Part shown: positions 1-20,380 of the stretch, in pieces | Numbering within the stretch: the first letter of the stretch is position 1 | How the letters are laid out: each line of letters begins with the position of its first letter | The notes under the pieces: generated by a model | Databases searched by the model: none | Seen by the model: the letters and a program-made list of their open reading frames with translations, nothing else | Told to the model about the DNA's origin: nothing | Assembly (NCBI GenBank): GCA_023515725.1 | Contig: JALDTO010000076.1 | Location: forward strand, 1-25,036 | Source: Amoeboaphelidium protococcarum X5 | Lineage: Eukaryota; Fungi; Aphelidiomycota | Reading direction: 5' to 3' | DNA: 25,036 nt | Made by a program: the position numbers and the translations under genes

Positions 1-1030
1 TTCTAACCTTAGCGTGGGAATATTGCGGCATGAGGCGCAGCAGCTCCATGTGGATGTTTGATCATAAATCTGACAAAGCTGAACGGGCAAATTATTCAGA
101 TTAAGATGTTAAAGAGCCGCGATAACTCAAATAACTATGAAGTCTCTAGTCAGCTTCAATTCGTTACTACAGGCCATCATCTCCCATAAACAGATTCCCA
201 TGATTGCGAATTGACCCGCTGGTTGTTTCTCTGCTGGGAAGAGGCTAAGAGTTTTACTACTAACGCAGTCCACTTGTTAACGGAGAAAAATTAACATCCG
301 CAAATGCAGCATCACCGCGCATGGAGGAAGTGGTAGCACCACGGCTCGACAATCGCTGGCGCAACTGATCAAAGCCTTATCTGAGACGCGTCACTCCATG
401 AGCAGAATCACGACCGCCATTCTACATATCTCTCTGGCCATCGCTAGGCAAAGCAAAGCAGTTTATCAGCAATAATTGAACTAAAACAATTTTAAGCGGG
501 ATAATCATCATCATTCTATTGAATATCTTTATACGATAAACTGAAAATTTGCTAGTAAAAAGGGGGCTATCAACACATCGCTTTTGTAAATTCAAACTAC
601 GATGTGTGAACTTTTACACGCGGTCTGTAACGTTACACACGATATGGATGCCACATGTTATAATGTTAATGGAGCCTTGCGCACAGACAATCTATTTTAA
701 GCAAGACGATACAAGAAATTAAATCGATAAAATAACGCGCTAATCAACCAATTTCTCTATTTAAATCTTTATAACCTCATCACTCTTCCTACGGACCCCC
801 CAGCCATCCGTGAAAACTCGGCTCACGACTATTAAGCAAACCAGGATTGTTTCTCAAAATGCGGTTTATGCCGTCATGAGATTAATCCACTAAGTCTTGC
901 AGCTCTTACTGAGTACGTCTCTGCGCCTCTTAAAGTGGAGGCACCTATTATTGAGCGTCCTCATTACTTATCTCGGCTGCAGCTTCCTACAACGCGCGCA
1001 TGACAGGATCATTCAAATAAGACCTCCCAA

Positions 1031-1582
1031 ATGCACCATGATCGTCATTCTGATTCTCTTAAACATTTTCAGTCTCAATATCTTACTATAACTATCTCTG
1101 ATATCCACGGCCAGTGGACGATTGATCGGGAGATGTTATTGCCGGATCCGAAGCCACTCTTCGATATCCTTGACGCGGGCCAGTAGATTGATCTGATCTA
1201 ACAAAGCCAGTCTGTGGAAGCTCTACTTCAGTGCTGGCACCACCAGTATGACCAGCACTGGCTGAGCGACTTGCACCATATAGACGCGTCAGACCACTAG
1301 TTAAAGGCTGAAACTCAACTGTTTGACCACGACGACGATGCGCATTCGCAGGATAGCTATTACCGCTCATTCCTCTGTGCAATGGATAATACTCTTGAGG
1401 CTAAGGCTCGCTATCCAAACTACCAGAAGACGAAGAAAGCAGACCTTGATCATGGTGAGACGGACGTCGTCGCAATCTTTATCTGCTGTTAGAACCACGT
1501 TATGGGTCAGTGGCTAAAGCTCCCACCAGTACAAAGGCGATTATAATTGCTCTAATCATCATTTAAAAGCTTCTATATCTGA
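1031..1582 (+). CDS. Hypothetical protein (~183 aa with TAR=Gln); possibly the 3' part of a longer interrupted frame starting at ATG 602
   Basis: ATG 1031 to TGA 1580-1582 is open when TAA/TAG are read as Gln (MHHDRHSDSLKHF...SFKSFYI). No recognisable domain. With only one stop codon, ORFs of this length can arise by chance. Confidence 0.3.
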
Positions 1583-1981: not shown

Positions 1982-3340
1982 ATGTTCACTGCTTTACTGC
2001 TGTCTTTGCTAGGCCTTGTATCAGCTGGTGATGTTATGCCTCGCTTCGCCGGTATTATCAGTTGCGCATCAACGTCTGTAAATTACGCTTCCCAAAAGAT
2101 GTATGCTGCGCGCAATGATGGTTAGGAGTATGCACCTACTATCATGCAAATCAATGGAGTCTATATGAGTGTTGCTAAGCATACTGACTTTTACCATCGC
2201 TTAAGTAGTGTTGCCGCTGTCAGTGAGGACCAAGTGGTCTATGGTGCTAGTTACGTCAATGGTCGAGTCGTGATGCTCTCGTAGGCAAATCTTTAGTCCA
2301 GTAATGTTCAATAGAAGTAAACTGGCTTAAAGTTATAATGGCCTGTGGATGAAATGGGGTATGTAGCGGTTGGAAATGTCAATGGTGGAGCGTATTTTTC
2401 GCTAAACAAAAACTATCGTTTACTTACGGCAGCAACTGTCCTCCTAACTAGTAAGTGTCAATGAGCACTAATGTCGGCGATTGGTAGTCAATACCCAGTG
2501 CTGTTGTATTAAACAGCACTCTTTACGTGATAGGCGTGAGACAGTCCGCATCTGTGATTGCCTCGTTTTTCAGTGAATAGTTGACCATGAAAAAGGTTAT
2601 GCAACTGTCAAATGCTACTACACTGCGCTCTCTGGTTGTCGTTGAAGGTCAAATTTATGCTGCTGGAAGCATTCAACTTAGCAGTAATGAAACTGGACTT
2701 TCATCGACAAGTGATCGTAACGCGTTTTACGGCCAGTTAAACACTGACAGTCTTGCGTTAGTTAACTCCAAGTTGGTTGGTAATCAAACTGCCAATGAAG
2801 TTATTACCACTTCATTTTATGATAAAATCAGTAAGTAGTTGTACTTTGTTGGCTACTCGTCGTAGAATACCTATTCAAATGCTCGTAACTTGATGTACGT
2901 TAGAGTTGGGTTAGAAACCGAAGGCAGTGAGTACAAGTCATTCCGCACTTACGATAATTTAAATGTTGAGCCTAGAAGTATTTCATCTTGGAATGGGACA
3001 GTTGTCATCGTTGGCGAATACACCGGTGTGAGGGGAGGGTTTCATTGCAGTTATAAACAACGGTAGTATCACGAACAATGCGGCTGAATACAACGGTGGG
3101 GGAGTAATAGATCCTGATTACAGAAAGAAGACACCACTGTTTGGTGACGGGACAGTTTTGGCATTACTTATAGCTCTTGTCGCGGGGATACCTGTTTTGA
3201 TGATTATCTGCGCCATTGTCTTCTTCGCGAAGAATCGCACACGCAGTAAGATATCTGCCAATGCAGCTGCCGCGGGGCCTTTGTCTTCGACTCCTACGGG
3301 CAATGCGTACGTTGAGATGGAACCTAATGAGAATCATTGA
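1982..3340 (+). pseudogene. Frameshifted paralog (copy 1) of the adjacent type I membrane protein; pseudogene or assembly indels
   Basis: Starts MFTALLLSLLGLVSAGDVMPRF and is colinear with 3788-5131 over its length. It needs one base added in the A5 run at 2408-2412 (otherwise TGA 2462-2464) and one base removed at TTT 3040-3042 (otherwise TGA 3085-3087). The TM segment VLALLIALVAGIPVLMIICAIVFFA and terminal TGA 3338-3340 are retained. Confidence 0.75.
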
Positions 3341-3787: not shown

Positions 3788-5131
3788 ATGTTCACTGCCC
3801 TGTTGCTGTCTTTGGTTGGCCTTGTATCAGCTGGTGATGTTCCTCGCTTCAATGGCATATCTAGCTGTACCTCAGTGACTGTCGATTACAATGCATCAAA
3901 GATCTATGCTACATGCAACCATGATTATGAGTATGCTCCGGCTATTTTGAAAATTGATGGCGGTCAGATGAGCGTTGCCTAGCACACCCAGTTTTACTAT
4001 CGCTTGAATTGTATTGCTGCTATTGGTGGTGACTAATTGGTATACGGTTCAACGGAGTCTTTCTAAGACTCTGTGATGTTGACGTAGACAAATCGCCTGT
4101 AGAATGTAGTTCAACAATCCAAGACTGGTCTTCCATCAGGTTACTAACCAGGTTAAATGGGATGCTTGATAGCTGTAGAGGCCGGTAGTGGAGTTTACTT
4201 CTTCTTAGGACGAGTATTACTCTACTTTAGGGGATTTAACTCTGCCGTTAATTACTAGTTGGTGGTGAGCCAAGAGGTCAATAGTTGGCAGTAGGTGCTC
4301 AGCGTTGTTTTATTGAACAATACTCTCTACGTTGCTGGAGTTAAAGAGTACAAGTCCATAGTCGCCACTTTTACCGCCGAGTCGTTGAATTTGATAAAGT
4401 CAGTTCATCTGTCGAATGCTACTTCAGTCGAATCTCTAGTCTTAGTAGAAGGTTAGATATACGCTGTTGGAAGCGTGAAAGGTAACAGCACCGACACTGG
4501 TCTGACGTCCAAAAGCAATGAAAACGCATTTTACGGTCAGCTAGATTCGACATCTCTTGCATTATCAAATGCCAAGCTGATCGGTAACTAGACTGCCGTT
4601 GAAGTTCTAACAAGTGCATTTTACGATAAAACTAATAACTCTCTGTACTTGGCTGGTTATTCCTCTTCTGAATCGAAGTAGTATGACCGTAAGTTGATGT
4701 ACGTTAGAGTTGGGTTATAATCCGAAGGCGGCGAGTATTACTCTTTCCGTAATCCTAATAGTGCTAATCTTAGGCCAAAAGGTATTGCGGCGTTGGGCGG
4801 CACTGTGGTAATAGTAGGTGAGTTTCCTGGTGTGTATGGTGGGTTCATTACTGTCATCTAAAATGGTAGCATTATTAATACGGCGTCCGATTACACTGGC
4901 GATGGACTCAAAGATCCTAATTACAGAGATACTTCGTAGTGGGGCGATCCTTCGTTTTGGATATTCTTCTTTATCCTATTATATGGTCTACCGTCGTTAA
5001 TCTTTCTATGTATTGTTGGTTACTGTGTCAAAGTGTGTATTCGACGCCAAGTGTAACCTGCACTTACCGCTTTTTCATAGCCATAACAACCTGGTCCAAA
5101 AAGTGATGGATATATGAAGATGTAAGCTTGA
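3788..5131 (+). CDS. Type I single-pass membrane/surface protein (447 aa): signal peptide, beta-strand-rich (propeller-like) ectodomain, TM helix, short tail (copy 2)
   Basis: Uninterrupted ATG..TGA frame with TAR=Gln. N-terminal MFTALLLSLVGLVSA, blade-like motifs (NTLYVAG, GQIYAVG, NSLYLAG, GTVVIVG), hydrophobic FWIFFFILLYGLPSLIFLCIVGYCV followed by basic residues. The fold is inferred. Confidence 0.88.
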
Positions 5132-5321: not shown

Positions 5322-6122
5322 TCATGACTCAACATCATCATCGATAATTTCTCTAGCAGCAGAGTCGGGCTGTCTGCAATTGGGACAATTACCCGAGATG
5401 GGCAACCATTATTTGATGCAGTCAAAGCAGAAGCAATGCCGACAATCCAGAGACACAGGATCTTTCAAAGTGTTGAGACATACAGCGCAATCATCATGGG
5501 CAGAATCCACAGGTCGCCGCTACCTCAAAAGATTCTCATCAACTTGATACGTCTTGGATTACAAATTTCTCCCGCCATTAAGTGAAGACTATTAAAAATT
5601 CGGATCTTGCAGGCGGCGGTATAAATCAGATAGGTCAATCGGCTGGTGAGTGGCTGAGTTTTATCGACTCGTCTACGGCGTCTCTATGAAACTGTTATGG
5701 TGAAGATACTACCCATATATATCACTCTACTATCTATCAGTCGCGTGTAATAGTTGATCTGATGACGAGCTCTAAGCACTGCCTGTTGCATCATCATCAT
5801 CATCATCATCTATATCAGCGAATACTTCATTTTGAGCCTCTCTAATTTGAACTCTTATCGGACACGTAACATCATCTTCATTGATATCCCACACCGTTTA
5901 CACTGAACCAAACTAACGGGCAGATTACGACGCGCCCAATGGTTAATGACCAGCATTACCAGAATTTCTATCCAGTAGCTCTTACGATAAACTGGTGCCT
6001 ATATAATCTGTAGATCGATATTCAAATGGCGACGTATAGCTGTGCCTTGGTGTATTCACTGGGGCACCTGTAATGTGTGAGATCAGCAGCAACGCGATCA
6101 ACGAAACAATGATAAACAACAT
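5322..6122 (-). CDS. Signal-peptide protein with C-terminal C3HC4 RING finger (266 aa); putative E3 ubiquitin ligase
   Basis: Minus-strand ATG at 6122 to TGA at 5324-5322 with TAR=Gln. Begins MLFIIVSLIALLLISHITG|APVNTP, has a polar/acidic linker with D7, then CAVC-x11-CRHCFCFDC-IKQWLPISGN-CPNC at 5489-5376, which matches RING-HC spacing including the Trp after the sixth ligand. Confidence 0.9.
5790..5810. repeat. (ATC)7 trinucleotide repeat encoding poly-Asp in the RING gene
   Basis: Seven perfect ATC units, read as in-frame GAT x7 on the minus strand. Confidence 0.9.
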
Positions 6123-6594
6123 GATATTCTATCTATAAATTCTAAACTCTTTCTCATAAAAGTTTGAAAGCAGCTTAGCACAAAGCAACTTGAGTCTCGA
6201 TTTGATAGATGATTCATGTGAGTAGCGAAACATCTCTATCTCATTCACAACTGGGCTGACGTCTGCGGCTAAGCCACGTATTAAAGCGGCGCTCCTCGAG
6301 GTTACAATCAATCAGCGAATCTTTTTAAGACGTCCGCATGATAAATATAGCAGTTCAAATGAGCCTTCTTCTAAAGCGGGACTAATTGCACACAAAAGTT
6401 CTTCAAGTTATGCATGTATTTGACTTGAATTATTTTAATTTATTTTCTACTATGATTGAGCGTTATCAGATCGCGTCCTGATCTTAACAATACATTTAGT
6501 ATCATCACTTCATCAACCGCTGATCGCGTTCTCTGAACTTTAAAATAACACCGAAAATTTAAATATAAAAGAAATTTAAAGAATAGACATATTG
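6123..6594. promoter_or_regulatory. Divergent intergenic/promoter region between the RING gene and RPC34, with two GATCGCGT motifs
   Basis: Head-to-head ATGs at 6122 (-) and 6595 (+). GATCGCGT at 6469-6476 and 6522-6529 in an AT-rich context. Confidence 0.5.
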
Positions 6595-7605
6595 ATGGCT
6601 GATAAAATCGAGCAAGTATTAGAAGTTATACAGTAGAGAGCGAATGGAATATCATCGCAGGATATATTGAAGGAGGTGGACGTGAAAGTGGAAGATCTTG
6701 GTGGTATAATCAATCAACTATCAGGCCAGAAGAAAATCACCATCATGACTGGTGATAACAATGAGGTGATCTTGAAAGCTGTAAGTGAATCTGAGCAGTA
6801 GTTGATGAAGCAAATGACTCCCGAAGAGTATGGAATATACACACACGTGCAGGCGTCGGGCGGCAGTGGTATCTGGATGAGGGACATTCTGAACAAGACT
6901 GGCTTTCACAGGTCGGTGGTGACGAAGGCGATCAAGAATTTGATGAATTTGAATTACATCAAGAGTATCACCAACGTGAAATGTCCCACACGAAAGATGT
7001 ATATCTGCTGTGGAGTCACTCCTAACTCCGAGATTGTCGGTGGTATGTTCTACTAAAACTCTACGCTTGATGCAGACCTGGTGAGGTAACTGACTCTGGC
7101 CACGACGCGTTTTATCGCCAGTCAAGATGGCCCTGATGCGCGGGGAAGTAGTTCTATGCTTGCCTCAGTCGGTCATGGCGTATGGAGTCAGAATGGTGGT
7201 TATGGATAATCAAGTGGTGGCAGTAGTGGTTCTGGTAGTAGCAATAATATCTCGCTTGAAGTCCCCACTCACAATGGAGTAACATCCAACTAGATTCTCA
7301 AGTTTGTCAAAGAGTAGACGATATCAGAGATGGAATTATCGCTTGCAGATTTGGAACAGTTGTTGACTATGTTAACCTACGACAGAACTCTCATCCAATA
7401 TCAGGATGGTAATACTGTGAAATGGCGACTGCATCCTCAATCTGCCTAATCTCAACTTAGTAGCGACGGTGGTTCGCACATTAAATTCAACAATTGGAGT
7501 AATTCAAGTCCATGTTCAATGTGCCCTGTTCATAACGAATGTACTCCTGGTGGCATAATCTCGCCACAATCTTGCGTATACATTAAAGATTGGCTGGAGA
7601 TATGA
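6595..7605 (+). CDS. RPC34: DNA-directed RNA polymerase III subunit C34 (RPC6/POLR3F), 336 aa
   Basis: Single frame with TAR=Gln. Winged-helix motifs GIWMRDI...KAIKNL...IKSITNVKCPTRKMY...PNSEIVGGMFY, and C-terminal PCSMCPVHNECTPGGIISPQSCVYIKDWL. Confidence 0.92.
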
Positions 7606-13283: not shown

Positions 13284-15620
13284 TCAAAAATCAAACTTAT
13301 TCTGTAGTTCATCAGCTAGCGCGTCCAAATCATCAACCTTGGCCTTTCCAGTTTGAGATGAGGCCATCATATCAAAGTTGTTACTATTCGAAAAGCTAGA
13401 TCCCATCACATTAGGCTGTGGAATACTACCAAATGCAGTCGATATGTCGGCCGTTTATCTCGTGCTCATCTGGCGGCGGACAGAAGCATTCCTCTGCACA
13501 GCACTTGATGATCCCATTGCCTGAGATGAGCCAGCGGCAAACTTATCACCAAACAGGTCCGGTTGCTGTTACTGCTGCGAGATGGATGCAGAAGAGTCAG
13601 CATTAAACCTACTGCTCACAGAAGCGCGTCTGTTCAGATCCGATTTACCTTCTGCAGATGGCACTTGGGATGTTCCTCTGACAGAGGCAACAGGCACAGG
13701 AGGCTTGAAATCGAACGATTCTGGAGCCTTGGCTTGTTTGCGCTTTCTAAAGCAACAACAGTAAATAGCCAATGCTAGCAATAAAACTATGACAACACCC
13801 ACTGCAATCACAGCCCACTAGAAGGATGCCCAAATTCCTAGCAATGCACCGAGCAACGCATTTCCATCAATAATTGGTCCGTTTGTCTACGTTGGTGTGG
13901 ACGTGGCACTCACCTAAGACACACTCAAAGTCTCAGTGATCGTCAAAGTGGCATTCAAAGACGCGGTAGGCAGAGAAGACTGGGCACTGATAGTAGTCGA
14001 TGAAGGCACAATAATCGGTCCAATTCTCGCAATGAAACTAGTTGAATTACCCCAAGCATTCTTGTTTATGCTAAACAATTGTCCCTCGGATTGACCAAAT
14101 ACGTACAACACGCCATTCGTGCTATCTACTCTCAGCTCACGTGTAAAACTTTCAAATGGCTTAGGCAACCCCCATTACCACACATCCAACACGGAACCAT
14201 CAGTGGTGTTCAAAGACATGATAAACATATCTCTCTCGCCATAAAACGGAAGTCCACTAAAGAGTGGAGATTTAGCATTTCCACCAACGTGCAGGATACC
14301 GCGCGAGGAGTCCAATGTGCCGGTGGTCAAGAATTCTGAGAATTGAGTGCCGTACATCGCGGTCCAAGTTAATTCAGCACCAGTGTCATTGATAGATAAT
14401 CTGGTGACGAACAAGTCTTGAAAGCCCTTATTCGTGTAGTTGGAGCTCATATTACCAAAAGAGTATCCAAAGACAAACAAGCTCTTTCCATCTGAGGAGA
14501 CAGACATTCCAGTAGGTGTATCAAATCCGACATTTTGATCAAGATCATCAGTACCAAACACAAAAGTCCAGTCAGGTTTGCCGCTAAATTCCTAAACTAC
14601 AGGAGATGGACTCGACGAAGCTGTTGTTGCCTCATCGGTTGTGGTAGTGGTGGATTCAGTGGATGATGTAGATACCTCAAGCGAAGCTGTGCTGAAGGTA
14701 GAAGACATATTCACATGTACAGTAGACACTGTTGAATTGGCAGACATCAAGGTAGTAAACATAGCAGTGGTAGTGGTAGTAGTAGTAGTCTCACTAGTAG
14801 TATCAGCAGTCGTCGTAGTTGTAGTACTAGTGGTAATGCCAAGTTCAGTAGGTGTCTTCATGTTCATACGCGCCACAAACACATTCTAAACACCTTTCAC
14901 TGCGACTCCGTTCACTGAAGTACGCTGGGCACCACCCAATACAAATACGATACCAGCGTCTGCAGCCAAAGGGGAAGTTCTTAATTAAGTAGGAATCTAC
15001 GCTGCATCATCAATCTGAAAGAAAGCCACAACAGTATTGTTACCACCACCAGGATGCCTAGTGACAACATACTGGAAGTTGTTATTTGTTCCCAGTACAT
15101 AGATGTCACCAGTCAGACGGTCTACAGTAAGATGAACCGGATTGATAACTCTGTCATTGCCGGCCTAGTTACTCGTGTCATAGGTGACTGTCTTCAGAAG
15201 ACTACCAGTGACTGGATCAATGACAAAGATCATATAAGAGCTATGCTAAAGATCAATGTCGTACTGAGTCAACACATAGCTCATAGCATTAGATCCAGAC
15301 TAGCCACAGAATGCTCCTTTCATCTTGTATTCGGAGGGTACAGTATAGAAGTAGTCAGCAGATGCAGCGCTGAAGTTACCACCATAATAAGAGCTAAACA
15401 GGCCACCAGTTGATCCACTGACATTTTAAAAAGTTTAGGCAGCAAACAATTTGTTGTCACTTCCCAAACACAATCTTTAACCGGATGATACATAATTATC
15501 ACTAAACTAACTAATGACTTTAGGCGTACCAGCTGAAGATCTAAAGCGCGGAAGATTGGAGGATGCCAAAGAGACTGATGCTATTGCAGCGATTAGAACA
15601 AAATGATTGATTGAGACCAT
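13284..15620 (-). CDS. Type I membrane protein (778 aa): signal peptide, beta-propeller-like ectodomain with Ser/Thr-rich insert, TM plus CCC, long cytoplasmic tail
   Basis: Joins four same-frame ORF-track fragments with TAR=Gln. MVSINHFVLIAAIASVSLA signal, repeats GVQNVFVARMN / GFQDLFVTRLS / GERDMFIMSLN and GDIYVLG / GILHVGG / GVLYVFG, TM WAVIAVGVVIVLLLALAIY-CCC-FRKRK, ends NKFDF-TGA. Confidence 0.88.
14604..14853 (-). repeat. Low-complexity Thr/Ser-rich (ACT/ACC-repeat) mucin-like coding segment
   Basis: Runs such as TTSTTTTTTADTTSETTTTTTTT, seen as GTA/GTG triplet repeats on the + strand. Boundaries are approximate. Confidence 0.8.
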
Positions 15621-15947
15621 TGTTATAACTATAATCAGTTAATCAATGAGGTGCCAGCAGTATATATAAACAGTATATTGTCACAATCAATACACAAAAT
15701 TTAAAATTTACAACTTTACAAATGTTTGAACAATTAACTATTAAAAGGCGCATTACTATGTAAATGAATTTTTATATCTCCAAGTAATTCCATGTGTGCT
15801 ATAAATAGATCCATGGCAACCATGTTTTGAGTAACGACCGGCAATCGAGGTGTTAAACACAAGTGAGCTTAAAACGAAGCGCATAATAAAAACTACCATG
15901 TTCCTCATATTTATCAAATTTACAAATTCATACACCAACCATACAAA

Positions 15948-18900
15948 TCAAGCCATAAAGTCACTGTCATCTTCCGATTCTTCAGTGTCATCATCTGACA
16001 CGTCAAACTTCTTGACCACCTTCTTCTTCGCTGGAGCCTTGCTCTTAGAAGCACCTTTCTTGCCTTTCTTTCCTGCACCACCAGCCTGTTGAATTCCTTT
16101 GGTAGACTTGAGATCTGCTTCATTCAAATCAGACTCCATCTTGTTCCATTCGTCCATAAAGTCATTCAGATCTCTAATCCACAGATCTTTGACACCGGTT
16201 GCTAACAACTCATCAAGTTCCTCTTGCTTCTTGGCGCGGTCCTCCTTCAACTTGGACACCTTTTCCGCAGTCAAACTCCAAATAGCCATAGAGAGTAAAT
16301 AGTCATAGCTACCAGCCATCGACGGGCCACTCTCATCATCACTATCATCAGCATTATCATCGGATGCCTTCTTACCAGTCTTTGGCATCGGCTTATAATC
16401 GCGCTTCTGCAGCTCAGCGATAATATCATTCTTCTTTCGATTCTGAACCACTAACTTTCCCTAAATAATCTCCATAATGAAGCGCACCTTATTGTCCAGC
16501 ACGGTCCAGTCTTGAGTCAGTTGATCTGCAAGGAACTCTTTACGCTTCTGATAGTACTGGAGACGAAGATGATAGAATTCTAATAGAATCTCCAAGGGAT
16601 TGGCATATTTTTTAATTCTTCCTTCTGGATCAAAGCATACCATGTTGGACGTGGAAATTGAAGAGACCATCTTGAACTTCTTTTCCAAACCTTCCTTCTC
16701 AGCAGCAGCCATATTGGCCTCCGTCAAATGAATCACAAAGTGCACAGTGGAGTCAGAGTGGTATTCCTTGTAATCCTTGATGAACGCCGGAGTCTTTTCA
16801 TTTCCAGTCAGCAGAGACTCCAGAAACTCTTTGTAAGTCTGTGTCCAGAAGCGTACAGGAAGTTCGGTAATTTCCAGAGTTGTCGCATCAACCTTAGTAA
16901 TCTTACCGCACACATTATACTTTCCATTTCCCAAATCTACCAAATCGCCATGGAATCCGCGATACCATGGATGCATTTGTACCATCTCATGATTCAACAT
17001 CAATCTTTTCAAATTCTCAACGATATCTCTTGGATTGTAATTAGGAATAGAACAACTCCACCCAGTACCAATACCTTCACCTCCATTAACCAACAACAGC
17101 GGCATCACGGGAATGTACCAATCAGGCTCAATCTTCTGGCCATCATCAGTCAGATAATTCAACAGATTATCATCAAATTTGTGAAATATTTTACGAGCGA
17201 TAGAAGTCAGTCGAGTGAAGATATAACGAGCGCTTGCAGCATCTTTGCCACCTTGCAAGCGACTACCAAACTAACCGATAGGTTCCAGTAGATTGATATT
17301 ATTGCTACCAACAAAGTTCTATGCCAAACCAACGATGGAAGACTACAGACTCACTTCACCATGATGATACGCAGAGTGCTCAGCAACATAACCACTCAAC
17401 TGCGCAACCTTGATCTCACCCTTCACTAGATTTCTTTTGAAACAAGCATAGACAATCTTGCGTAGACCAGGCTTCAAACCATCAACGACGTTAGGGATAG
17501 ATCTGATATTATCAGCCATGCTGAACAGGATGAGCTCTTTATTGATAAAATCTGATACACTAATCTGATCAGTGCTGTGATCAATAAACGTACCAGGCTT
17601 GAAAGCTCTCAGCCACTCCTTTCTATTATCCGTCTTCTTCTTATTGAAAGCCATATCAATCATATCGCGCTCCTCTTCAGAAATCGGACCAAACTCCTTC
17701 TTATGATGAGCAAGATTCAAGAAATACTACTTGGCATCTTCCTTGGTACTGGTTCCGAGACCTTTGTAGTATTTGATACTCCAGCCAACCGCGCCATCAG
17801 TCTCCTCGAGCCACTACTCGTACTCAGGTATAGTATAAAAAGTAACAGAGTTCTTCCCTTTCGTAGCTTTCACAATTGGAGTGATAAATTCACACAAGAA
17901 ACCTTCCAGATGAAGCAGCTCAGGGAAGAAATGATCCAAGAAATTCAATATTAAGCCTTTGATGTGAGAACCATCGTGATCCTAATCAGTCATGATCATC
18001 AAATGTCCATAGCGAAGAGTGGATGTATCAGTGTACTTTTTACCATGCTACAGGCCCATAATCTGCTTGATGTTATTAATCTCCGCATTCTCCATAATCT
18101 GCTTGTGAGTAGCTTCACGGACATTTAGTAACTTACCACGCAATGGAAACACACCATAATAGTCTCTACCAATGACACCTAAACCGGTAACAGCCAGCGT
18201 TTTGGCACTGTCTCCCTCAGTGACAATCAAGGTACACTTGGAGCCATCCTTGGAACCGGCCTTGTTTGCATCATCAAGCTTTGTGATTCCAGCAATTCTG
18301 ATTCGCTTCGATCCATCAGTCTTCTTCAACATGAGATCTTACTTGGACTTAGCCCAATGCAAGACATTCTCAATCAGACCAGACTTTTTCATCTTATTAA
18401 CAAACTCATCACTAATTGCACATTTGCTTCCAAATTGACTAGATTTTAAAGTCATATTCTCTTTAGTCTAAGAATCGAAGGCAGGATTTTCAATAAGACA
18501 ATTGATGAATAGCCACATTTGATTCTTGATTTAAAATGACTTGACAGGTGCAGCCTTGTTCTTCTTCTGAATGGCATCAATAATCTTGGACACAACAGTA
18601 TCAGCAACATGGTTGACGTGAGTACCACCCTTCGACGTAGAGATAGAGTTCACAAATGATACCTACTAAAATTGGCCTTCACTGAGAGTAAAAGCAACCT
18701 CCCAACGATCATTCACAATCTCATGAACCACAACAGGCTTCTGGCCGCCCAGAACAACAGCATTGTTATCCTTGGATGAGACGAAAAGATCAACGTATTA
18801 CCTAAAATTCTTGATTTTGATACGCTGATCATTCAAGTACACCTTGACATTCTTCAAACAACCAGCCATGTCCACCACACGCTTTTGCAGCAGAGCCTCA

Positions 18901-20027
18901 ATATCATGATCGATTCCATCCATTCCAAACTTACCAAAATCAGGCTTGAACGTGATTTTAGTGTACTCTTCTTCTCTAGAGTTGGAAGACAACTTCGGCT
19001 CTCCCTTCACTGACATATTCTTCGAAAATACCTACTTATACTTTCTACCAGACACCTTGTCAGCAGTTTCCACGATAAACTCTGTACTGAAAATGTTACA
19101 CAACTTGGCACCATAACCATTTCTACCACCAGTGACTTTACGATCATTGTCATCATAATTGCTAGAGGTCAAGAGATGACCAAAAATCAACTCTGGAACA
19201 TACACTTTCTCCACAGCGTGAATCTCAATAGGAATACCCTTACCATTATTGTGAACGGAAATCACACCATTCTCCTTGTCGATGACCACCTTTAGAACAT
19301 CCATAGACGGATCTCTCTGCTTATTATCAGCCGCATTCACCAAGATCTCGTCAAATATTTTATAGAAGCCAGGCACGTAAGAAATATCACGAAAAACCAT
19401 AGTACCACCATGCTCATTCTCAGCCTACTCCCACACCCACATTTATTACTTGATAGATTCAACAGAGCCAATATAGGTGTCAGGTCTCAGCAGAATGTGC
19501 TCCAATTGACTCTTCTTCTGATAAATCTCTTCAATAGTCTTACTCTTTTAGTTTTAGCCATTTGAAGCAGTTGGCTGGGCGGCAGGACGGACATTCTCCT
19601 GCTCTACCTCAGCTGAAAAACTATCACCACCATCCTAGTCGTCGTCAGCATCAGATTAAACCAAGATCTTTTGCTTACTTGCCGCTGATTTAGTCGACTT
19701 GGGCGCACTTTTAGTCTTGGCCACTTTAGACACTGCCGGCTTTGACTTTTTCTATGGAGCCACGAAACTGTCAAATTCATCATCATCATTATCAGATGAA
19801 TCAGCACCACCATGGGCAGCAGATGACTGAGTTAAATCAGAAGATGCAATTTTCTTAGACTTCTTGCTTTTACCAACACCACTGGCAGCCTTTGACTTTG
19901 TCGTCTTAGAAGAAGCAGTAGCAGTCTTTGCCAGCTTAGTCTTCTTTGGTTTAGGTGAAAAATCATCAAAACTAGCCTGGTATGAAGACTCAACCATGGC
20001 ACCAAACTCACTATCACTATCAGACAT
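15948..20027 (-). CDS. TOP2: DNA topoisomerase II (eukaryotic type IIA), ~1359 aa, intronless
   Basis: All ORF-track fragments share one frame. Motifs EHILLRPDTYIGS, KIFDEILVNAADN, GGRNGYGAK, TEGDSA, PLRGK, IMTD(TAG)DHDGSHIKG, SAYHHGE, ASARYI (catalytic Tyr), ending in TGA. Start chosen at MSDSDSEF; an in-frame ATG at 20156 is an alternative. Confidence 0.97.
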
Positions 20028-20159
20028 AGTATGCTTCAAATTCTTTATGTATACTTCAGATACTCGAGTAGGAGGAAGAGAAGCAGCAGATGAAGATGAA
20101 GATGCCAAAGAGGCGAGAGAAGAGATTCCATAAGAGTCTTTGAAACTGAAACACATTTC

Positions 20160-20380
20160 GTTTCACTCTGACGCGTCTTTATCGATTTCCATTTCCGTCT
20201 GGAAGATTGTTGAGGCGAGAAGGGCAGAGAGAGAAGACACACACGGGATCTTTTAACGATCGCGACCGAAACGCGTAAAAATTTACTTTTTTATGGTTTC
20301 GTAAGAGGATTTAGTGACTTGAGATTTAGAAACGTTCAGTCTGATTTTAATAAATATCTAACTCAAATTAACGCGATCAC
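20160..20380. promoter_or_regulatory. TOP2 upstream region with MCB-like ACGCGT boxes
   Basis: ACGCGT at 20171-20176 and 20271-20276, GATCGCGA at 20258-20265, ACGCGATC at 20371-20378. ACGCGT is the fungal MluI cell-cycle box; its function here is inferred. Confidence 0.5.

Follow-up and report, generated by a model that had tools for sequence, protein, structure and literature searches.

SP-RING1, a 266-aa protein encoded in a 25,036-nt stretch of Amoeboaphelidium protococcarum X5 DNA (contig JALDTO010000076.1, positions 1 to 25,036; hereafter the window), is probably a secreted RING-type E3 effector that would act in the cytosol of the algal host, judging from its sequence and that of its relatives and neighbors. 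Aphelids are phagotrophic algal parasitoids placed next to fungi and crash algal mass cultures; to our knowledge, no effector has been characterized in them. SP-RING1 is a good candidate to become the first effector of this group known to manipulate its host. In the literature, we found no report of RING effectors or such secreted RING proteins in aphelids, which agrees with the preliminary description of this DNA, where no characterized example was known in the lineage; the infection transcriptome paper does not mention RING proteins (PMC8657485). If SP-RING1 is a secreted E3, aphelids would manipulate a living host before eating it, and secreted RING ligases would have another independent origin in addition to those of insects, nematodes, plasmodiophorids and microsporidia.

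The SP-RING1 gene and its RING domain

The gene, its parts and flanking genes, and its other copies are as follows (window coordinates).

5322..6122, minus strand: SP-RING1 coding sequence, 266 aa in table 6, a single open frame with no intron needed, matching NCBI protein P0005
6066..6122, minus strand: putative signal peptide, residues 1–19, rule-based, predicted cut Gly19/Ala20
5490..6065, minus strand: linker, residues 20–211, polar and probably disordered, with a presumed substrate-binding or targeting role
5556..6065, minus strand: lysine desert, residues 20–189, 170 residues without Lys
5373..5489, minus strand: C3HC4 RING, residues 212–250, over cut-off for PF00097 and PF13639
6123..6233, minus strand: upstream in-frame ATG and 37-codon open extension, most likely untranslated
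6595..7605, plus strand: RPC34 (RNA polymerase III subunit), divergent neighbor that begins a housekeeping block; dN/dS control, 0.06
3788..5131, plus strand: signal peptide, putative surface domain and C-terminal TM, convergent neighbor
Other copies: MIR68_006298 (homeolog on C192); MP228_013103 and MP228_010828 (second assembly, GCA_023515745.1)

Read from 6122 to 5322 in table 6 (TAA and TAG as Gln), the frame is open and ends in TGA, while the standard code would place 16 stops in it. Table 6 is the code of the window, since topoisomerase II, EF-Tu and RPC34, all close to SP-RING1, are full-length only with it; frames of at least 150 aa number 47 in table 6 against 4 in the standard code. 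The preliminary description had proposed a real gene hidden at this place. Hidden it is in the standard-code ORF track, but GenBank already contains an identical 266-aa translation, unnamed and annotated as hypothetical. In the 23.6 Mb genome, the locus occurs again on C192 (86% identical), and there are four copies in two strains, the three others being annotated from the same ATG; from the locus tags, we take the MIR68 copies to belong to X5 and the MP228 copies to strain FD95. An artefact or pseudogene is ruled out because the frame is open in all four copies and under purifying selection, and the claim of a real gene is confirmed.

The RING is intact and under selection. It scores 36.5 bits for PF00097 (cut-off 21) and 38.7 bits for PF13639 (cut-off 27.3), has its ligands in C3HC4 spacing (C212, C215, C227, H229, C232, C235, C246 and C249) and matches RING2, Pex10, RNF146 and TRIM RINGs in the PDB with E-values from about 1e-8 to 1e-6. 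Across four copies and two strains, no variation was seen at the eight zinc ligands or at V214, L216, W239, P247 and R250. From established RING knowledge, we take the first four of these latter residues to be the E2-binding face and R250 to be the linchpin. Values of dN/dS are 0.12 in the RING (Fisher p = 7e-4 against neutrality), 0.45 in the linker (p = 3e-5) and 0.37 over the whole gene, the last against 0.06 for RPC34 and a range of 0.06–0.17 for RPC34 and CRAL-TRIO. The linker is 192 aa long, has 68% polar or disorder-promoting residues and gave no match in a Pfam search of residues 20–211. A single-sequence AlphaFold2 model assigned it pLDDT < 50 and left the RING unfolded too, which makes it weak evidence for disorder. 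Both the polar, disordered linker of about 190 aa and the complete C3HC4 RING reported in the preliminary description are in agreement with these results.

It could be argued that a secreted RING serves for binding, or as a decoy for E2s, and not as a substrate ligase, or that translation from ATG 6233 yields a type II surface protein whose RING is external. In phylloxera, the RING region of one SPRING mediates binding to host proteins (PMC6892190), and the nematode effector RHA1B has an E3-independent function (PMC6461251), both of which would suit a role other than substrate ligase. However, the invariant linchpin Arg250 and Trp239 suit catalysis, and it is an active ligase that would gain most from a lysine desert. 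For the surface form, all four copies contain ATG 6233 with an open frame behind it, but the 37-codon extension is unconstrained as protein (see below). We consider either version of this alternative very improbable.

SP-RING1 is small, lineage-specific and fast-evolving. Searches of protein collections and of metagenome and viral contigs gave no full-length relative outside A. protococcarum, bearing in mind that protein searches need shared words and may miss very distant kin; the remaining protein matches cover the RING region only (12–36% of the query). The preliminary description had considered that conserved housekeeping orthologs would speak against an effector. None appeared in the protein, metagenome or viral searches. 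A viral origin of the RING was also set aside: Atlas matches to Nucleocytoviricota clusters score < 0.9, leads at most, and the tree gives no placement. Separately, a 169-aa RING protein, P0008 (L054/L055:6001-6510), lies on prokaryote-like contigs beside an archaeal-looking ribosomal S28e gene and matches SP-RING1 in the RING only.

Signal peptide, signal anchor and start codon

Residues 1–15 of SP-RING1 are an unbroken apolar run (best 11-residue Kyte–Doolittle mean of 3.49), followed by a predicted cleavage site in which Ile17 occupies −3 and Gly19 occupies −1, and then by Ala20-Pro21; Pro at +2 recurs among neighboring secreted proteins. The homeolog carries Leu11Ser in its h-region and Cys19, likewise small, at −1, a position held only by Gly or Cys across the four copies. 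In a rule-based check, all four copies satisfied the hydrophobic-core and (−3,−1) rules, and hydropathy over the N-terminal 19 residues of SP-RING1 (2.44) is also of anchor strength. The dN/dS of the signal peptide is 0.29. The hydrophobic N-terminus with a cleavage site at ITG/APV, as first described, fits the rules in four copies, but with a hydropathy that would also serve an anchor. The companion claim that no other hydrophobic segment exists was borne out: past residue 35, the best 19-residue window averages 0.39, and post-signal maxima are 0.36–0.64 in the four copies against about 3 for PA-TM-RING helices.

The main competing explanation is that the segment stays uncleaved as an N-terminal signal anchor (N-lumen, C-cytosol). 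SP-RING1 would then be a cytosol-facing E3 on the parasite’s own ER, mitochondrion or vacuole membrane, and the Lys-free region a substrate-binding arm like those of yeast San1 and Slx5. Such an arrangement needs no extra translocation step; it is compatible with the lack of glycosylation sequons and consistent with the uncharged N-terminus, the anchor-strength hydropathy, a weakly basic downstream flank (His16, Arg26, His27) and the lysine deserts common among cytosolic E3s, including those of this genome. On the other hand, the apolar run spans just 15 residues and leads into a (−3,−1) site of the standard kind that all four copies retain, no basic cluster adjoins the segment, the homeolog tolerates Ser within it, and a species-restricted gene with raised dN/dS is unlike housekeeping ligases. 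Moreover, secreted neighbors with shorter signals (11–14 apolar residues) and no RING share the desert, which an anchor cannot explain. We regard the anchor as unlikely. An uncharged signal is also present in the type I surface-protein neighbor (3788..5131), and the N-terminus of a second island protein, SP-RING2, is interrupted by Lys, Gln and Asn and is, therefore, a poor fit to an anchor.

ATG 6122 is the likely start, judged by the comparisons that follow. An in-frame ATG at 6233, 37 codons before it and conserved in the four copies, had been overlooked in the preliminary description. The extension that it opens has a dN/dS of 2.8 and differs from the coding region (p = 0.04). The A+T content of the preceding 30 nt is 0.80 for ATG 6122 against 0.50 for ATG 6233 and at least 0.67 in 18 of 20 other starts, a comparison that is not fully independent since some of the 20 were picked by the analyst. 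Out-of-frame ATGs are found at −122 and −95 of the upstream region, and all four GenBank models begin at the downstream ATG. An upstream in-frame ATG is expected in a genome with a single stop codon; 7 of the 20 other genes have one, among them a ubiquitin–S27a fusion gene for which homology settles the start. Examples are found at 15951-20162 and 13287-15680 of the window, in the ubiquitin–S27a gene of L037 and in the SERCA gene of L049. With such frequent upstream ATGs, calling the first one overextends N-termini and can mask signal peptides. Taking together the dN/dS, the A+T-poor context and the frequency of upstream ATGs in other genes, ATG 6233 is disfavored as a start. If it were used, basic residues would precede the hydrophobic segment, and the RING would still be expected outside under the positive-inside rule.

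Lysine avoidance in an island of putatively secreted genes

SP-RING1 is located at the border of the housekeeping block, adjoining a run of signal-peptide genes, and this arrangement is syntenic in all four copies. Four genes that combine signal peptide and RING lie within C192:446554-461593, a 15-kb island of secreted genes. Its further members, and a repeat inserted in one of them, are listed below.

76..514, minus strand: 5′ part of SP-RING2 (signal peptide and Lys-free linker); the gene starts at 514, with the RING located on contig C292
1..76, minus strand: end of a dispersed repeat, LTR-like and about 170 nt long, with TG...CA ends, a 5-nt target duplication and about 20 genome copies
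780..1562, minus strand: disordered 260-aa protein, secreted and RING-less, with 10% Arg and, in the FD95 copy, a mature chain devoid of Lys
780-1562 of the window, minus strand, with L053:14561-15343, 17706-18500 and 19108-19770: RING-less signal-peptide disordered proteins (three proteins, 0–1% Lys, about 10% Arg, no sequons)
C192:459479-461593 (L035:2479-4593, minus strand): tandem pair with signal peptide and RING-H2, homeologs on C17 (L036)

SP-RING2 (signal peptide, linker and C3HC4) is intact in the C192 copy and in both FD95 copies; on the window contig, it is interrupted by the LTR-like repeat, whose insertion in the coding region (window 1-76; L027, C292 1-76) explains the contig break. 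Two copies of this repeat are about 2 kb apart on C155. The tandem pair shows an apparently folded domain between signal and RING-H2 and forms a second family of such proteins in the island. In the window, positions 1982-3340 and 3788-5131 hold tandem surface proteins with C-terminal TM; the former is fragmented by frame changes, and its FD95 models have 449–452 aa.

The table-6 search for further signal-peptide and RING paralogs without TM, as suggested in the preliminary description, yielded four genes in this neighborhood, SP-RING1 included, with 50 RING-bearing frames read of about 114 places in the genome. Eight of the 50 frames belong to the four genes, and two, on C158, have a signal and internal hydrophobic segments. 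The set is no large expansion among the loci read. The C158 case (L037:3279-6058, plus strand) is a tandem pair with signal-like N-termini and a variant RING, and no homeolog of it was seen in the RING match lists. Common origin of the SP-RING1 and SP-RING2 RINGs received weak support in one tree (85/70) and none in a second; their linker alignment (P = 0.04) is unconvincing after multiple tests, and RING trees left SP-RING1 unplaced. The sole clear linker paralogy among island proteins is between the RING-less L053:17706-18500 and 19108-19770. A motif of about 8 residues, Phe-x-Pro-Leu-Thr-Ser-Gly-Leu, found 55–70 residues from the start, is common to SP-RING2 (L053:15613-15900) and a RING-less neighbor (L053:14561-14800); spotted by eye, and with a whole-linker alignment that is not significant, it is a possible shared linear motif.

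What several of these proteins have in common is a scarcity of lysine. Mature SP-RING1 has 3 Lys in 247 residues (1.2%, against 6.9% Arg), and its Lys-free stretch takes up 69% of the mature chain, a scarcity that distinguishes it from the cytosolic RING proteins of the genome (P = 0.002). In SP-RING2, the stretch reaches about 260 residues, and the three RING-less disordered neighbors have 0–1% Lys and about 10% Arg. Elsewhere, Lys content is 2.4–4.1% in surface proteins, 5–11% in housekeeping proteins and 4.7% in pooled cytosolic RING proteins; the two RING-H2 proteins of the island have a normal 6–7%, and the 3788..5131 protein, used as a control, is also normal in Lys and carries many sequons.

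Lysine avoidance in the island genes is actively kept. Pooling four of them, chosen for being Lys-poor, 0 of 198 minority-state amino-acid changes were to Lys against 10.9 expected from codon neighborhoods, and Lys was the most avoided of the 20 residues; four control genes gave 5 such changes against 4.7 expected. SP-RING1 alone had 0 against 1.9–2.5 expected, which is not significant. Avoidance of Kex2- or trypsin-like cleavage was discarded as the cause, for the proteins are rich in Arg and in Arg-Arg pairs, and Lys is missing throughout and not just before Arg. The avoidance fits exposure to ubiquitin machinery after secretion. Deserts also occur in the genome’s own cytosolic RING proteins (e.g., L010, L007, L015), so in a RING protein a desert shows exposure to ubiquitin machinery and not whose machinery it is. 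Proteins that stay in the ER lumen, or that remain extracellular, do not encounter this machinery, which makes the deserts of the RING-less neighbors the best indirect pointer to cytosol entry after secretion. N-glycosylation sequons point weakly in the same direction: none is present in SP-RING1 (2.2–3.0 expected, P 0.04–0.08) or in the three RING-less proteins (1.8–3.0 expected in each of the four), a trend that contrasts with the sequons found in surface neighbors.

With 170 Lys-free residues and the pooled island result, SP-RING1 belongs with the lysine-desert proteins. Like San1, Slx5, BAG6 and the A chains of ER-trafficking toxins, it places a long, disordered, Lys-free and Arg-rich stretch next to ubiquitin machinery; unlike them, the island deserts are in signal-peptide proteins of a eukaryotic parasite, some without any catalytic domain. 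Such deserts are known to curb the ubiquitylation of E3s and of toxin chains reaching the host cytosol (PMC10169902, PMC13696103); the words effector, secreted and pathogen are absent from the lysine-desert review.

We tentatively propose, at somewhat less than an even chance, that aphelids deliver signal-peptide, disordered, Lys-free and glycan-free proteins to the algal cytosol, some of them with RING heads, and that lysine avoidance is the footprint of this delivery. We know of no host-translocated effector and no described translocation route in the aphelid lineage. If the proposal holds, lysine avoidance could serve to single out the effectors that are translocated into hosts in this sister lineage of fungi. 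The lysine-desert signature of the secreted island as a whole is the most novel result of this work and lends itself best to testing: being shared with RING-less secreted neighbors, it offers a simple marker for host-exposed proteins and leads to the question of how such proteins cross the host membrane.

Secreted RING ligases of other parasites and a model for SP-RING1

The preliminary description set SP-RING1 against signal-peptide RING proteins that normally have a TM helix. Its case was overstated; a signal peptide combined with a RING and no TM is an established parasite design, known from SPRINGs, RHA1B, PbE3-2/PbRING1 and NemLGF2, and secretion and E3 activity have been proven for it in other parasites (PbE3-2: bioRxiv 10.1101/2022.10.26.513834; RHA1B: PMC6461251; cf. 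SPRINGs, PMC6892190). Apart from cleavage, which is predicted by rule, SP-RING1 has the sequence-level features of secreted RING effectors.

A close parallel in architecture may be drawn with SPRINGs of the grape phylloxera Daktulosphaira vitifoliae, which, like SP-RING1 with its putative signal peptide, combine a signal peptide with a RING and no TM, lack homologues and are clustered in the genome (PMC6892190). Their median length is 252 aa against 266 for SP-RING1, and their dN/dS is likewise raised (median 0.57 against 0.37). They differ in being proteins of insect saliva, in number (138 genes against four here) and in having feeding-stage expression and host partners demonstrated (PMC6892190). 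We detected no sequence relationship between SP-RING1 and SPRINGs. Microsporidia grow in direct contact with the host cytosol. In one of these early-diverging fungal relatives, Nematocida displodere, NemLGF2 proteins join a signal peptide or N-terminal TM to a C-terminal RING and have been proposed to engage the host ubiquitin system; the family differs from SP-RING1 in having more than 230 members averaging 467 aa (PMC4928854). SP-RING1 falls outside NemLGF2, as no Nematocida protein is among its named matches (candidates of 146–465 aa).

Plasmodiophora brassicae, like A. protococcarum, is an endoparasitic protist of hosts in the plant lineage, and secreted RING ligases without a TM are few in it as well (3 of 60). 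Its PbE3-2 has proven secretion, E3 activity and a substrate, RD21A (bioRxiv 10.1101/2022.10.26.513834), but is a longer RING-H2 protein (RING Cys at 423) of an unrelated lineage, Rhizaria. RHA1B of Globodera pallida is a signal-peptide protein with a C-terminal RING E3, which uses host E2s; its mature chain has a single Lys, needed for activity, a scarcity comparable to that of SP-RING1. Unlike SP-RING1, it is RING-H2 and stylet-injected, with activity and targets proven (PMC6461251).

PA-TM-RING ligases (RNF13/RMR type) and ATL-type RING-H2 ligases share with SP-RING1 an N-terminal hydrophobic segment and a C-terminal RING. ATL-type proteins are defined by a RING-H2 with a basic region after the N-terminal TM. 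SP-RING1 was rejected as PA-TM-RING, having no PA domain and no internal TM helix before a RING-H2, and as ATL-type, since its fifth ligand is Cys (C232) and no basic cluster follows the segment. True PA-TM-RING genes do exist in the A. protococcarum genome (L005/L006, L009/L011).

We hypothesize that SP-RING1 is made from ATG 6122, enters the ER, loses residues 1–19 and is released at the parasite–host interface. It would then reach the algal cytosol by some route, the weakest step of the model, where the C-terminal RING would recruit host E2~ubiquitin via its canonical surface. The fast-evolving disordered linker may bind host substrates, which would be ubiquitinated with host E2s, and the lysine desert could shield the ligase from self-tagging and host proteasomes. 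The secreted, host-targeted E3 of the preliminary description gains from the architecture, the RING, the lineage restriction, the paralogs and the desert, but secretion alone would not carry the product into the algal cytosol: the trophont of a related isolate, FD01, occupies the space separating the host wall from the plasma membrane (PMC3577820), so a further membrane crossing is needed. No translocation motif was found in SP-RING1. It also counts against the model that a zinc-binding, Cys-rich domain would have to survive the oxidizing ER.

Alternatively, a secreted and, by prediction, catalytically competent SP-RING1 might cross no intact membrane, acting through the penetration tube at injection, on cytoplasm exposed by breakdown of the host plasma membrane or on newly engulfed cytoplasm in the food vacuole. 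The tube reaches into the cytoplasm of the host, whose membrane breaks into fragments late, and the parasite feeds by phagotrophy (PMC3577820); E1 and E2 genes of the host go up in the course of infection (PMC8657485). However, E1, E2 and ATP would presumably be short-lived in a digestive vacuole, and long-term selection against Lys better fits sustained exposure, which leads us to give this route little chance. Entry into the algal cytosol remains our preferred reading.

As a minor observation, an Arg-Gln-Arg-Arg sequence similar to furin/Kex2 sites is found just before the RING (residues 200–204; 5511-5525, minus strand). The residue that follows it is Pro in three copies, and its first Arg is missing in one.
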